A stretch of DNA of 64,000 bases, from contig NC_135768.1 in the NCBI RefSeq assembly GCF_052425735.1, positions 4,154,001 to 4,218,000 on the forward strand, given 5' to 3'. This DNA is from Oculina patagonica. Its lineage: Eukaryota. This document shows, piece by piece, positions 25,001 through 31,000 of this stretch (positions are counted from its first letter, which is position 1; each line of letters starts with the position of its first letter). The translations under genes and the position numbers were made by a program. The notes under the pieces were generated by a model, which was not told the DNA's origin, ran no database searches, and saw only the letters and a list, made by a program, of their open reading frames with translations.

Positions 25001-28000
25001 CGTTATTGTGGACACTCGCTATTACGGACAAAATCCAGATCCCCGGCGAAAGAGGTTTGACTGGAAATGACTCCCGCTATTACGGACTCTCGCTATAACG
25101 GACACTAAACGACGCCCCGAGCGTGTCCGCTATAACGAGAGTTGACTGTATATATAAGAGAACAGGTCCAGTAATCAATGGCTCATTTTGGAATGAGCTA
25201 TCTTCCTCATCAAATCCTCCATAATACAATTGCATTTTTTACCTGTATATCCCATTATCTGTCCAGGAATTTCCAGGTAACAACACCTGTAGCAGAAGAT
25301 CTGGCCACAGAGACGACAGTGGTGTCGACGACGAAAAGTGTTGAACTTTTCACCACACTCATAGCACTCCTTGCAGTTTTCATCTGGCATCCAATACTGC
25401 TTGAAATCACTCTCTTTGTACTCTTGTCTTAGCTGAAAGAATGACATTTTATTTTTTGGCACATGAAATATTTTAGAACAACTCTGAAAAATTATTTTTA
25501 TGTGCTTCACAAGGTTGTTACAGTTTTGAATTCTGTGGATGAACAAAAACTCAGTGACTGGCTTCAAGGAAAACAGTAGGTTTTGCCTTCCCAAAACCAT
25601 CAATGTTCCCTGAGATCAAGGCGAGAGGAACATTGAGAGTACATGAGAATCCAAAACTCTACATGCTTGCCGTTGTGCCACTCATTAAATCATACAGTAG
25701 GATCTCGATTTCTCAAACCCTTGGTTTCTTGAAAGTCCCAATTTTTTGAAGCAATTGTCGTTTCGAGAAATCAGGATTCTACTGTACCTTGTTATACTCA
25801 GGAACAAAAAAAATGCAAGCTATTATCTGTGAATAAAACCCTGGTGTGTCATTACTTAAATGAAAGCTGTTGAGGAATACTTTCATGTGGTACTGTTTAT
25901 TATGCTGTACAAGGTGGTTCTAACTTTTAGGTCTGTGGATGAAACCCTGTTACGCCACAAAATGTAATAATTGACGCGAAATGTAATAGTAACCCAAAAT
26001 GTAATAACTTTTGACGCAAAATGTAATAGTAACCCAAAATGTAATAACTTTTGACGCAAAATGTAATAAACTCGGTAACCCAAAATGTAATAACTTTTGA
26101 CGCAAAATGTAATAGACAAAAGTAACGCAAAATGTAATAAATTTGACGCAAAATGTAATACCTTCAGTTTGACAAATGCCACCTATCAATCAGGTTGTTC
26201 ACGTCATCGATCACGTGACTACAATGAGTGCCAAAAGTTTTTGAGACGGTTGGTTGAAATGAATTCTAATTTTAACTTTCCCATCTTTCCACTTTAAATC
26301 CGGTGCAGCTTGTGAACCACTCCCCCTCCCCCTTTTCAATGTTGTACACAAACGAGGCAAGTCTCCCAGATAGATAATCCAACATTGGTTCAGGGAAAGG
26401 GGGTAATATCGACGGGGTGTGGGGGTGAAAATGGTCTAAGGTACTCAAAAAGTGCCGAGTGTATCAACACTTTTGGCGCCCATTGTAGATCGAAGATCGC
26501 TCATATTTCTGTTTCAATTATAGAATTCAACATATTAACCAGAAATTCTTGGCAACCATATTCAAAAGAGTAAGAAGCCTCTTCCAGCAAAGTATAAGTC
26601 GAATATCGAGCGTTTGTTGAGCGATGGAGATAAACGTGGAACGACAGAAAGCTATATCACTATATAAAATGGCCCCAAAAGGATTAAAAACGGCAATAAA
26701 AAAATAACATCAAACAGAATACCGTTAATGTTTTCTCCTATGTTATTTTTTTAGTATTCTTTTTTAAGATTTATTTTCTAAATTGCTTTTATATATTTCG
26801 GTGCCCTCGACATGTAACCCTCGACCCTCTATATTTTACTCTCGACCCTCGACGAAAAGTCAAACTCGGTGGGGACTGGTGCACTGAAGGAATTGACATT
26901 GGAATGCGTCAAGGAAGCCAGCAAAGTGCTACAATGTCAAAACTGTCTAGACACTGTCCGCTGCCACCTAGTTAGTTACGCGCAACAGCTCTGCCAAATT
27001 CATTCAGTTCAAGTTACTCTTTCTCGCCGAAATAACGACGTGAAAATGAATGCTTTTCTGGCTTGTTTTGTCTTCATGACCGTTGCCTGTAATATTCGAG
27101 TACTAGCCATTTCGTCTTTGGATGAAGAAACGTATAACACCTTCCTTGAATTGCTGAATGGAGAATTTAATGTCCCAATCAGAGAAAGAAGCACTAAGAT
27201 AAAATCGGCGCTTGTTCGATTCTGGCGGAATAGAGAGCGTTTATCACTGAGAGCAGGACAAGTGTGTTATGATGATCGACCGATTCTGAAAAAATCTGAC
27301 GTAACAAATGTTGTTAAGAAGGCCTTTAAAGACACGAAAGGATCCGGAACAAGAAAGCTGTTTCATCGACTGAAGAATGTTTACCACGGAGTAGGGGAAA
27401 GAGATATTAGACGTGTTCTCGGAAAATCTCGCCTCCATCAACAATTAAATGTACGTTTTCAAAACAAGGCCGTTCTGAAGCCGATAAGGGCACGCAGTGT
27501 ACAAATCCGCCACCAAGTTGACTTGATAAGTATGGAAAACATGCCTGCTGCCTGGAAAGGAAAGACATTTAAATTTGTGCTTTCTCTGATGGACGTGTTT
27601 AGTCGCTATCATTGGCTGATACCGTTAGAGGGAAAAAGTAGCAAACCAATTGCCACGGCACTGTCGGAGATCTACATACAGCATGGACCACCTAAAGTTA
27701 TTCAGCATGACCAAGGCTCGGAGTTTAAAGGTGCAGTTAAGAAGCTTTGTAAGAAACTCCGAATTAACGTGGTCAAAGGACGCCCATATCACCCACAGTC
27801 GCAGGGTAAAGTTGAACGAGCGCATCGTTCATTTAGAAAAAAGCTCATGTATGACTTGTTAACAATGAAAAACGGAGGTGCGAACTGGGTAAAGTCGCTA
27901 CAAAAGTATGCAAAAACATTAAACGAGGAGCCACGGGAGGAACTGTCATGGAAATCTCCATTTGAGGTGTATTATGGTCGCAAAGTGAACCGTTTTGATC

Positions 28001-31000
28001 GACTTTCCGAGCTCCCTGTTGCACAGGAGTGGGATCAAACCCTGGAGGAGTACGAAAGAATGGTAGCACCAAAACCTAGGGACTACACACGCCGCACTAA
28101 CGATTGTAAAAGAATGCAACAATCAGTGGCTTCTGCAAGCAACAAATGCGAAAACAGAATGATTAGGAAAGGATTGAGGAACACCCCCCATCTGTTTATA
28201 ACATTGGCGAAAAAGTTCTTATTCGATACCCCCCAGCAAAGAAAATCTGTAGGAAGAGGTGCGTGTTGCATGCTAAAGTCATTAAGAGAAACTTACAGAC
28301 ATGCAAGTATCTTGTTAGGTTTAAATATCCAGCCGGGTCATCAAACTTACTAAAGAAGTGGATTCCAGTTAATGATATCACCAGCACAACACTCGATAAA
28401 GAGAAAAGAAAGAGGGAAGTTGCTTGTAACCGAAATAAGAGGAACCATCGCCAGAAATACTATATCCCTATGGAAAACGATAGACAGTTATTTTCGAGTC
28501 GAATCTCAAATCAGAGGCTAGCCGTCCGATTTGATCCACCCAAGGATGGGAACTGTCAATTCTCTGCACTTTGCCATCAGCTGACTCAAATAGGCATATT
28601 TCGATCCCCAAAAACTTTAAGGGAAGAGCTGGTAGAGTATTTGCGGACACACCCTGATGGTGCTGATGGATTCCCACTGGAGCTGTTTGTCAGCTTACCC
28701 TGGGATGAATACTTAAAATCAATGGCTTGTGATGGAACGTATGGGGATCACTTGACACTACAAGCTGCTGCGAACGTCTTTCAAATTCAGATAATCGTCT
28801 TCTCGACTCTTGGCCCCTCAGCAACTCAGATAATATCTCCTGTAGGTGGAGATCCTCTTTGTACCGTGTCTCTTGGCCATTTCGCAGAGGGCGCTGGGGA
28901 ACATTATGTAAGCTTATCAGATCTGAGTGACGGTGTCTCACAGCTAAACGATGGCTGCCAACCGTTGGAGGACGAAGAGAGTGGCCAGGATGACAACGAA
29001 AGTGAGGTACAGTTAGATGAAGTCCACTTACAAACAGAGGGAGAAGAGCTAGATCAACGTTATGTTCCGAATGAAAAAGTGCCAGGTCAAGATAGCGGCC
29101 ACGAAGAACACATGTCAAGTCAAGAAAACGACCAGGAGGAACACGTGTCAAGCCAAGAAAACGGCCAGGACAAACACATGTCAGGCCAAGAAGATGGCCA
29201 GGAGGAACACGCGTCAAGCCAAGAAAACGGCCAGGAGAAACACCTGCCGAGCGAAGATAACAACCAAGGAAACGCACAAGGAGACAGCGGACCATTCCTG
29301 AACTGTGATGTATTAGAACGAATTGTAACAATAACATTGGCTATCTCTCCCGCAATGCGTGCTTCTTTACGGACAGTCTCAACGTTCTTCAAAAATATTG
29401 TGGACAAGATTCCTCTGCCCAGAGTGTACATCCCAGAGCTGACAGGTCATGTGCTCCGTATCAGCGTCAGGAAGATAATCTCCATGAAAGGAAAAGGTTC
29501 TGGTGCAGTCTTGGAACTTAAAAACATCATCAAATCAAATAGATGGTCAAATGCTTGGCTGCTCTTAGTGAGCGACAGCCTTGGCTGGTTTTTCATAAAG
29601 TCAATTTACTGGAAGAAATAAGTTTGTCTACATGCGATCCTCGTTCCTTTTTTTTACCACAAAATGTTGTGTTGATGTTAATTCTGAAAATTTCAGTTGT
29701 TGTTAAAAAAACACAGGATACTGTTTTGAAACTGTCAATGTACATAATGACAGACATGCAAAATATGTTTATGTTTAGAAACAAAAGATTCCCGGCCCAT
29801 GTAACCTTTAAAGCGTGAAAAGGCAGATTCCGTTATTACACGCAACATTCGATCAGTCTAGATAGTCCGTACGGACTGCATTTGCGTATATAGGAATTTT
29901 TTTTCGTTCAGTAATTTAATAAAATAAATAAAAAGTTCCAAATTTTGAAGCTGGTCACATACCGAAAACTCATAAAAATAAGCCCCCCTGTATAATAAGC
30001 TCGCCCCGGGATATTAGCCCCCAAAATTCGAAAGCGCAGAAAAGCTTCCTATAAAAAGCCCCATCCGCGTAGCCAATGGACTGTTAGGGTAAGCTATTCT
30101 TTAAGTTGTTTTCTGAGTGTTTAAGCTGTGGTTCCTTCCTATGATAAGCCCTCCGTATAGCTCCTACCGAATATAAGCCCCTTGAAATAGTCCTGCCAAA
30201 TTTGGCATTTGGCTATTGCAATAAAACGGAAATTTTTGATCTAGTCACGTGTTCTATGACGTTTACAGCTTGATTGATAGGTGGCGTTTGTCGGTTCCAA
30301 GTATAGATGCTCACATGTGTACTGCCCCGTAAGGCAAGGACAAAACTGAAGGTATTACATTTTGCGTCAAATTTATTACATTTTGCGTTACTTCAGTCTA
30401 TTACATTTTGCGTCAAAAGTTATTACATTTTGGGTTACCGAGTTTATTACATTTTGCGTCAAAAGTTATTACATTTTGGGTTACTATTACATTTTGCGTC
30501 AAAAGTTATTACATTTCGGGTTACTATTACATTTCGCGTCAATTATTACATTTTGTGGCGTAACAAACCCTAGTGTGTGACCATTCAAATGAAAGCTATC
30601 GAGCAGTACTTCTATGTGGTACTGTTTATTTTGGTGTACAAGGTGGTTCTAACTTAACCTCTGTGGATAAAACCCTAGTGTGTGACCATTCAAATGAAAG
30701 CTATTGAGCAGTGCATTCTTGTGGTACTTTTTATTATGCTGTTCAAGGTGGTTTTATAAAGTAAAATGTGGTGCTGTTCATGTACCACATTTTCCCAAGT
30801 TGAAGTTTCACAATCTTTGTACGTTGGCACCCTGAGAAGTTAAAAACCAACCATGCCATAGATTCCTGGAAATATACCCTTCCCACTGAATACTAACCTG
30901 TCCTCTTCCATCTGCCGCCGCGTTCAGGCGACCCAGCACAGCGTGCACATTACGAGAGCCAGGAGAAGCACGCCTCCCAGGAACCGATCCAACTGCTGGC

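Follow-up and report, generated by a model that had tools for sequence, protein, structure and literature searches.

An integrase-type transposon of the coral Oculina patagonica encodes a transposase with an OTU protease and a predicted F-box-like tail

A 64,000-nucleotide stretch of the genome of the coral Oculina patagonica (NCBI RefSeq assembly GCF_052425735.1, contig NC_135768.1, positions 4,154,001 to 4,218,000 of the forward strand; hereafter the window, C11:4154001-4218000 in the 529-Mb assembly that we searched) contains a complete DNA transposon of 4,618 bp, located at window positions 25948-30565. We consider it probable that this element is a cut-and-paste transposon of the autonomous type, interrupted by one frameshift, which stands near Ginger2/TDD and whose transposase combines an integrase, an OTU cysteine protease and an F-box-like tail, with a part in the ubiquitin system that comes from modelling. 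The main support for this reading lies in the anatomy of the element, the identities of its domains and their conservation.

Results

The element starts with TGTTACG and finishes with CGTAACA (5' letters TGTTACGCC, 3' letters GGCGTAACA), giving it TGT..ACA ends. Its terminal inverted repeats (TIRs), of 223 nt each, agree at 220 positions and are constructed from 40-46-bp subrepeats (Table 1). The motif AAATGTAAT is found ten times in each TIR, and the entire window holds it 11 times on the forward and 10 times on the reverse strand. The element is inserted in a tandem repeat with units of ~105 bp and interrupts one of them; units left intact carry a single AACCC, and the element is flanked by two, a 5-bp target site duplication (TSD). 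Among 20 other copies with paired termini in the genome, 18 are likewise bordered by a perfect 5-bp TSD of varied sequence (AACCC, AGCGC, CCGTT, AAAAT and others). With up to 3 mismatches allowed, the genome contains 82 instances of a 30-nt terminus and none of the reversed control, well above what chance would give.

Within these ends we found one intronless gene, encoding a transposase of ~857 aa in two reading frames. Frame 1 is open at 26869-28353, with an ATG at 27046, and frame 2 extends from 28167 as far as a stop at 29619-29621. In an alignment with L002 and L075, the window copy is one base shorter at about 28182-28184 than both a paralog on C4 and a sister subfamily, and relatives cross the same region in one open reading frame (ORF; ...RxNPPSxYxxGExVLIRYP...). 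Unless the assembly has slipped at this point, the window copy would thus have a single one-base frame break. No contig from a sequencing run of the same species crosses 28081-28188; another contig, from a coral metagenome, covers 28008-28297 with one letter more than the window has, the place of that letter not being located. The frame-1 and frame-2 pieces were searched separately and not as a joined sequence.

The first of these pieces contains a DDE integrase core of the DD35E type, which matches the Pfam rve model above its curated cut-off. Its catalytic codons lie at 27520-27522 (D), 27709-27711 (D) and 27814-27816 (E), and all three residues are invariant in 28 relatives. Upstream of the core, at the position of the integrase HHCC domain, the model consists of helices, and a structural alignment of the integrase piece covers KRBA2 residues 114-467. 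Zinc ligands were not apparent in this N-terminal domain, as its His and Cys positions are unconserved in alignments of 13 and 28 sequences, and no match to an H2C2 finger (PF17921 or PF09337, Integrase_H2C2) was obtained at E values up to 1. Downstream of the core, a barrel stands in the position of the integrase C-terminal domain. Its consensus, NPPSxYxxGExVLIRYP...KRNLKxxxYKVxF...KWISVxDITS, contains no GPY/F motif. Pfam matches to the barrel were below threshold (Agenet for four of the 13 members and Tudor-knot for one), and its profile matched the PDB at chance level only. By its sequence, the barrel is weakly consistent with an SH3-like integrase C-terminal domain.

The OTU domain follows, again with a Pfam match above the cut-off. 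The catalytic Cys codon (28554-28556) belongs to a DGNC motif (28545-28556) and the His codon (28902-28904) to GEHY; both motifs are in register with human OTUD3 (4bou), the nearest solved relative (E 4.8e-6). Across relatives the His is invariant and the Cys nearly so, being present in at least 90% of members. We infer that the domain is a protease of the deubiquitinase type, or one directed at a ubiquitin-like modifier. Behind it lies a low-complexity spacer with 36 Asp or Glu residues versus 4 Lys or Arg.

The transposase starts with a hydrophobic, signal-peptide-like segment. Of 23 listed N-termini, 17 have a hydropathy maximum of at least 1.7, while sequence identity is just 0.20. In most of the N-terminally complete relatives, a hemichordate member among them, it is therefore the hydrophobic character, and not the sequence, that is conserved. 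Hydrophobic starts of 15-20 residues were also seen in L075 (1271-1340) and in the proteins P0003, P0006, P0020, P0029, P0236, P0248 and P0253, and in one subgroup the hydrophobic stretch is followed by a basic run rich in K/R and G.

A preliminary description of this locus, made from the letters alone, had placed the limits of the element, its TGT..ACA ends, TIRs and 5-bp TSD just where we find them, and had proposed a two-frame coding region of about 857 aa from ATG 27046. It had also named, in order, a DDE integrase, an SH3-like barrel, an OTU domain with intact catalytic residues, an acidic repeat spacer and a final globular domain. Our analyses bear out the two frames, with their single break, as well as the integrase, the OTU domain and the spacer. 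For the barrel, the claim stands in part: sub-threshold matches in 5 of the 13 members speak for it, and the support is weak, with GPY/F absent.

The same layout was found well beyond this locus. In a HMMER scan of 1.84 billion cluster representatives (clustered at 50% identity), the tail was detected in at least 245 at E <=0.001, and always at the C-terminus. When long tail-bearing proteins were tested, OTU was present in 10 of 10 and rve in 9 of 10. Relatives encoded by a single ORF, 819-847 aa in length, span the entire query. Members were also found on many metagenome and Logan contigs, some with one intact ORF of this length; two contigs with intact relatives (L029 and L030) show no TIRs because they end inside the elements. 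Named sources include Oculina, Montipora, Acropora, Orbicella, Actinia, Ptychodera, Haliotis, Tegillarca, Mytilus and the grouper Epinephelus moara; the hosts comprise corals, anemones and molluscs as well as a hemichordate and a fish.

Conservation among 12 diverged full-length relatives differs along the protein. Mean pairwise identity is 0.56 in the DDE core, 0.51 in OTU, 0.43 in the barrel, 0.40 in the N-terminal domain and 0.30-0.37 in the tail, and falls to 0.26-0.27 in the linkers and 0.12 in the spacer, which is unconserved between relatives. Because synonymous sites are saturated, with proportions of synonymous differences (pS) of 0.74-0.96 in four codon-aligned pairs, we compared pS with the proportion of nonsynonymous differences (pN) in place of dN/dS. 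In these pairs pN is 0.19-0.36 for the tail, 0.16-0.34 for OTU, 0.21-0.32 for the barrel and 0.46-0.67 for the spacer. Tail and OTU pN are well below the saturated pS, and therefore the accessory domains are not neutral; neutral evolution across copies, a possibility raised in the preliminary description, is not borne out. The rve-OTU-tail layout is a fixed character of a large family of marine-animal transposons that has apparently not been described before. The order of modules is as first described, and it is a trait of the family rather than a peculiarity of this copy.

In the O. patagonica genome, the window copy is the sole full-length member of its own subfamily. Besides it we found a partial copy on C4, 96% identical, and several derivatives with internal deletions, 1.0-1.7 kb in length. 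Termini in the genome group into three sequence subfamilies, and a 5.3-kb member of a sister subfamily (L075) has the identical protein layout and is likewise interrupted. A translated search for copies yielded 53 matching stretches (E <=1e-10) in more than 20 places at 36-60% identity. These matches are mostly damaged, and some lie within open frames of 684-964 aa; we therefore take the family to have been recently active in this genome. The long open frames of sister lineages (for example C5:6177348-6180138, C2:21525806-21527095, C10:15325571-15326860 and C6:15548561-15549943, at 36-60% identity) suggest that it may still be active in O. patagonica. We also observed a 6.4-kb non-autonomous member (L067, C9:7024974-7031607) with perfect termini and an ATGGC TSD, which has no transposase; its cargo is a reverse-transcriptase-like ORF present twice in inverted orientation, whose C-terminus is GIY-YIG-like (Penelope-like).

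The annotation of the locus raises the alternative that it is a domesticated host gene of the integrase-OTU type and not a mobile element. An 823-aa 'hypothetical protein ACROYT_G034868', identical to the window reading frames, is annotated here, and the integrase-derived host genes KRBA2, SCAND3 and GIN1 provide precedents (PMC3575427, PMC2836005). However, the near-perfect TIRs, the TSD, the internal-deletion derivatives and the dozens of related termini are those of a transposon, and the related copies are multicopy and mostly damaged. Moreover, the frame is broken, and the annotation bridges the break by omitting part of the barrel. We regard a domesticated gene as very improbable.

The tail comprises 109 aa and was modelled with AlphaFold2 from a 42-sequence alignment at a predicted local distance difference test (pLDDT) score of 93.3, so that the globular domain of about 110 aa expected at this end is confidently folded. 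The model consists of helices at residues 9-22, 24-31 and 35-43, followed by a beta-beta-alpha-alpha-beta-beta unit. In an exhaustive alignment with 48,161 PDB chains, F-boxes provided seven of the eight best and nine of the eleven best matches, all on residues 3-45, at Z scores of 5.1-3.8; Z values of ~5 or below are expected for 40 residues, and count against the F-box reading to the extent that they also fall in the range of common helical arrangements. The best match was COI1 (Z 5.1, root-mean-square deviation 3.1 Å over 41 aligned residues, 24% identity), followed among F-boxes by FBXO42 and FBXL17 (4.5 each), Skp2 (4.4), FBH1 (4.1), FBXL5 (4.0), and FBXL2 and Fbw7 (3.8 each); the F-boxes of AnkB, cyclin F, beta-TrCP and Cdc4 ranked lower. 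Among the 42 relatives, Pfam matches below threshold were obtained to F-box in 8 (best E 0.0079) and to F-box-like in 2 (best E 0.002). F-box families were also the only named families among language-model neighbours of the tail, and they recurred in two shape searches. At the start of the module many relatives have the canonical Leu-Pro-x-Glu, where the window copy has Leu-Asn-x-Asp.

Against PDB sequences, a profile of the 42 tails had only weak hits, to MDA5 (its second CARD, E 0.041) and to the N-domains of lentiviral capsids (E ~0.9). Both were rejected, as their motifs come in another order and the scores do not rise above chance. The last ~68 aa gave only weak structural matches within the shape searches with the tail model and the exhaustive PDB alignment; this part was not folded alone.

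We then modelled the tail with coral SKP1. The Oculina SKP1 gene (C9:6.24 Mb) is split into short exons, and the partner used was a 162-aa ORF (L083:148-633) on a coral-metagenome contig of cDNA-like character; the ORF contains the very peptides of the Oculina SKP1 exons, and presumably it is transcript-derived or a processed copy. The predicted complex scored 0.78 (0.78-0.79 in three runs) versus 0.01 for the best of three controls. The runs agreed in at least 84% of contacts, with a partner pLDDT of at least 68; of 78 solved complexes 51 attained this mark, as did 2 of 108 mismatched pairs. The predicted interface joins SKP1 residues 96-156 to tail residues 3-38, which corresponds to the canonical F-box groove. 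The modelling thus supports tail residues 3-45 as F-box-like and predicts that they dock on coral SKP1, in line with the F-box-like character first proposed for the tail.

These results have to be set against several others. The window's own tail had no Pfam F-box match, a profile of the 42 tails found no F-box among PDB sequences, and a Foldseek search with the tail gave nothing significant in either the PDB or the AlphaFold database (AFDB) clusters, although F-box entries crowd the AFDB list, which we treat as a lead only. The window copy has Leu-Asn where F-boxes usually begin with Leu-Pro. The SKP1 score may reflect the model's memory of solved SKP1-F-box complexes, in which case it would speak for likeness rather than binding. 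Together with the modest Z scores, the failed searches would fit an alternative in which the element is a plain Ginger1-OTU transposon, its last 110 aa being a lineage-specific extension, for example for multimerisation or DNA binding, unrelated to SCF (SKP1-CUL1-F-box) ligases, and its F-box likeness that of any three-helix arrangement. Ginger1 elements with a C-terminal OTU are indeed documented in Hydra (Ginger1-1/2/3/11_HM), Aplysia and aphid (PMC2836005). On the other hand, the prominence of F-boxes among the best PDB matches, the contact of Pfam F-box models with 10 of the 42 relatives, and the predicted SKP1 complex at the canonical interface all argue against a generic likeness. The structure of the element, considered below, also argues against Ginger1, and we judge this alternative possible though not likely.

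Ginger1 transposons, as defined by Bao, Kapitonov and Jurka (2010), have a 4-bp CCGG or CCGT TSD, a YPYY motif, an H2C2 finger, GPY/F and a C-terminal OTU or Ulp1 domain (PMC2836005). The element resembles them in its TGTNR ends, in a TIR whose 223 nt lie within their range of 40-270 bp, in having an integrase followed by OTU, and in its cnidarian and mollusc hosts. It differs in its 5-bp TSD with no consensus (in the window and in the 18 of 20 copies described above) and in the absence of both H2C2 and GPY/F. Moreover, an acidic spacer, an F-box-like tail and a hydrophobic N-terminus have not been reported for Ginger1. In the region of YPYY we noted a loosely similar stretch, 'L.L..G.L.Y..R.(I/V)..K', viewed without Ginger1 reference sequences.

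For Ginger2/TDD, the TSD is 4 bp in metazoa and 5 bp in TDD-4/5 of Dictyostelium, and there is an H2C2 finger with neither GPY/F nor YPYY (PMC2836005; TSD lengths of the superfamilies are summarised in PMC10045372). Here the likeness extends to TGTNR ends, TIRs of 45-300 bp, a 4- or 5-bp TSD, the lack of GPY/F and an abundance in cnidarians and protostomes. In contrast, metazoan Ginger2 elements have their 4-bp TSDs in AT-rich RTATAY targets, whereas those of the present family are 5 bp, varied and mostly GC-containing. Published Ginger2 transposases have an H2C2 finger, with no OTU or F-box described in the literature that we searched, while here the zinc ligands are absent and OTU and tail are present. 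In Swiss-Prot, the integrase piece has its nearest structural neighbour in KRBA2 (E 4e-15), a protein with an integrase that derives from Ginger2 (PMC3575427); SCAND3, likewise a domesticated derivative of Ginger2/TDD, ranks fifth and the Ginger1-derived GIN1 ranks 18th. In their sources, members of the family carry the automatic names 'KRBA2-like' and 'SCAND3-like'. By published descriptions and structural neighbours, the family looks closer to Ginger2/TDD than to Ginger1.

GingerRoot/IS3EU elements, known from coral, sea anemone and fish, have a 6-bp TSD and ends that are mostly TA..TA (PMC6839031, PMC10045372). They share with the element an integrase-related DDE transposase without HHCC, TIRs of 100-150 bp and similar hosts, with no OTU mentioned. 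Membership in this group was rejected on the TSD length, 5 bp in place of 6, and on the TGT..ACA termini. The 'Ginger-type' label of the preliminary description therefore applies in part: integrase, ends and TIRs agree with it, and the TSD, H2C2 and GPY/F features of Ginger1 do not. Its statement that some Ginger transposases carry OTU or Ulp1 is correct, having been published for Ginger1 (PMC2836005). The architecture as a whole had seemed new to it; the OTU fusion has been in print since 2010, whereas we found no description of an F-box tail.

A further alternative is that the element is a fragment of a Polinton/Maverick-like or another integrating DNA virus. The nearest language-model cluster of the integrase piece is viral (Preplasmiviricota), and four 'viral metagenome' runs (X2-X5) hold a ~97%-identical copy. 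These runs contain ~40% of the element's sampled words, and the X2 contigs of that copy, placed on 26744-29947, cover almost the whole gene. Coral virome preparations commonly contain host DNA, and most simply this is coral DNA carried into preparations of virus-like particles. Polintons have a 6-bp TSD, a length of 15-20 kb, and a protein-primed polymerase and capsid; the element, however, has a 5-bp TSD, TGT..ACA ends, a length of 4.6 kb and one gene, with no ORF for a polymerase, capsid or packaging ATPase, and its deletion derivatives are typical of TIR transposons. A viral origin is thus extremely unlikely.

Several other features lie in or beside the element. The nested miniature inverted-repeat transposable element (MITE; Table 1) has its own 23-nt inverted ends and corresponds to element positions 271-547, which are matched by dozens of ~85% copies on other chromosomes. 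It is common to related element copies of 95-96% identity and is therefore older than those copies. The ~105-bp tandem repeat (unit ...TCTGTGGATAAAACCCTAGTGTGTGACCATTCAAATGAAAG...GTGGTACTGTTTATT...CAAGGTGGTTCTAAC...) occupies 25826-25947 and 30566-30760 and is hugely abundant in sequencing runs, where word depths reach tens of thousands. Read joints resembling an 'empty site' were considered as evidence of insertion polymorphism and rejected, as they derive from other units of the flanking satellite. Close upstream of the element, a minus-strand ORF fragment at 25175-25603 has a FYVE-type zinc-finger signature (...RRHHCRLCGQIFC...).

Table 1. Coordinates of the element and its parts in the window
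Feature	Position	Strand	Basis
Left TSD, AACCC	25943..25947		Copy at 30566-30570; intact tandem-repeat unit with one AACCC
Left TIR, 223 nt, ten AAATGTAAT in 40-46-bp subrepeats	25948..26170	+	220/223 match to right TIR
Subterminal inverted segment	26171..26221		86% complementary to 30242-30292
Nested MITE, 264 bp, CAATGAGTGCC...GGCGCCCATTG	26222..26485		Tc1/mariner-like, TA/TA flanks; outside the transposase gene
Hydrophobic signal-peptide-like N-terminus, residues 1-21	27046..27108	+	Maximum 15-residue Kyte-Doolittle hydropathy 2.2
Helical domain, ~130 aa, at integrase HHCC position	27109..27498	+	Helices in model, pLDDT ~90; aligned to KRBA2
DDE integrase core, DD35E	27499..27990	+	PF00665 (rve), E 2.6e-9, 37.7 bits vs cut-off 32.6
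Frame break; frame 1 homology ends and frame 2 takes over	28181..28190	+	Alignment with L002 and L075; relatives continuous
Barrel, Tudor/Agenet/SH3-like, ~68 aa, at integrase C-terminal-domain position	28185..28385	+	Conserved Y, E, Y, W, V, D
OTU cysteine protease (predicted)	28518..28916	+	PF02338, E 1.3e-12, 48.8 bits vs cut-off 23.3
Acidic low-complexity spacer, 125 aa, isoelectric point 4.05	28917..29291	+	Five 33-nt (11-aa) repeats, 29047-29266
F-box-like three-helix module (predicted), tail residues 3-45	29286..29414	+	PDB fold matches, weak Pfam matches in relatives, SKP1 model
Beta-beta-alpha-alpha-beta-beta subdomain (~68 aa) and stop	29415..29621	+	Conserved W, A-W and G-W motifs; pN 0.19-0.36
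Right TIR, last letters CGTAACA	30343..30565	-	220/223 match to left TIR
Right TSD, AACCC	30566..30570		Same 5 nt as left TSD

Discussion

From the anatomy of the element and what is known of its family, the transposase would bind the ten AAATGTAAT-containing subrepeats of each TIR, cut at the TGT..ACA ends and join them with a 5-bp stagger at sites that share no strong consensus. If the models are right, the F-box-like tail would bind SKP1 and thereby recruit a ligase of the SKP1-CUL1-F-box (SCF) type, and the target of ubiquitination would be selected by the C-terminal ~68 aa or by the integrase itself while bound to DNA. The OTU domain would act in cis to remove ubiquitin or a ubiquitin-like modifier, and may either shield the transposase from self-ubiquitination or edit ubiquitin at the site of transposition. 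F-box proteins are typically self-ubiquitinated within SCF, and therefore a cis deubiquitinase that protects the transposase would be the most economical reading. It is also possible that the tail binds SKP1 outside SCF, by analogy with some non-SCF F-box proteins. Control of the transposase's own turnover, deubiquitination of chromatin and degradation of silencing factors, which the preliminary description put forward as functions, are speculation.

In a bolder version of this scheme, the family would encode its own SCF substrate receptor, fused to a deubiquitinase: through SKP1-CUL1 the F-box tail would bring about the destruction of some host protein that restricts transposition, OTU would shield the transposase from that ligase, and the N-terminus might, for example, tether the enzyme to a membrane until its release. 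The host target might be a silencing, chromatin or DNA-repair protein, by analogy with polerovirus P0. Several parasites use F-boxes of their own to hijack host SKP1-CUL1 and have host targets ubiquitinated, among them polerovirus P0, which targets ARGONAUTE1, the PRANC/ankyrin proteins of poxviruses, and Legionella AnkB. These viral and bacterial F-box proteins are stand-alone adaptors; in contrast, the F-box-like module is here fused to a transposase and a deubiquitinase-type protease, and its substrate-binding part would be merely ~68 aa with no recognised fold. We consider this version quite unlikely.

Our preferred reading, of a Ginger2/TDD-like transposon whose transposase has both an OTU domain and an F-box-like tail, faces difficulties beyond those of the tail itself. 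A signal-peptide-like N-terminus is odd for a nuclear enzyme and hard to reconcile with it. Gypsy integrases score nearly as well as KRBA2 against the integrase piece, and the H2C2 finger of Ginger2 is missing. The RNA runs that were searched for the gene were not found to hold it, a result that is uninformative. Finally, the window copy is broken, so that whatever function there is must be ascribed to the family rather than to the locus.

DNA transposons have recurrently captured cysteine proteases of the ubiquitin and SUMO systems, Ulp1 in Mutator/KI-MULEs and Ginger1, and OTU in animal Helitrons/Helentrons (PMC2836005). For none of these other transposons has a ligase-recruiting module been reported alongside the protease. 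In the literature searched, which consisted of papers rather than Repbase or Dfam entries, we found no F-box or hydrophobic N-terminus in any Ginger-type transposase. OTU on Ginger1 transposases has thus been known since 2010; the new features are a conserved tail of F-box-like character, an N-terminus that resembles a signal peptide, and a metazoan lineage with a 5-bp TSD and no zinc finger. To our knowledge, ubiquitin- and SUMO-system proteases have been recognised on transposons for 15 years and nobody knows their purpose.

As the window copy is broken, the interest of the element rests with its family. As published, the definitions of Ginger1 and Ginger2 both fail to accommodate this sizeable group of integrase-type transposons from corals, molluscs, hemichordates and fish, and repeat annotation is affected, since pipelines now name its copies KRBA2-like, SCAND3-like or Gag-Pro-Pol. 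Across hundreds of diverged lineages, its transposases couple on one protein a predicted eraser of ubiquitin, the OTU domain, with a likely recruiter of a ubiquitin writer, the F-box-like tail. This coupling offers a concrete hypothesis for the dealings between element and host, in which the transposase would bind SKP1, direct a ligase to a target and protect itself through OTU, and the family may be a transposon counterpart of the F-box proteins that viruses use in counter-defence.

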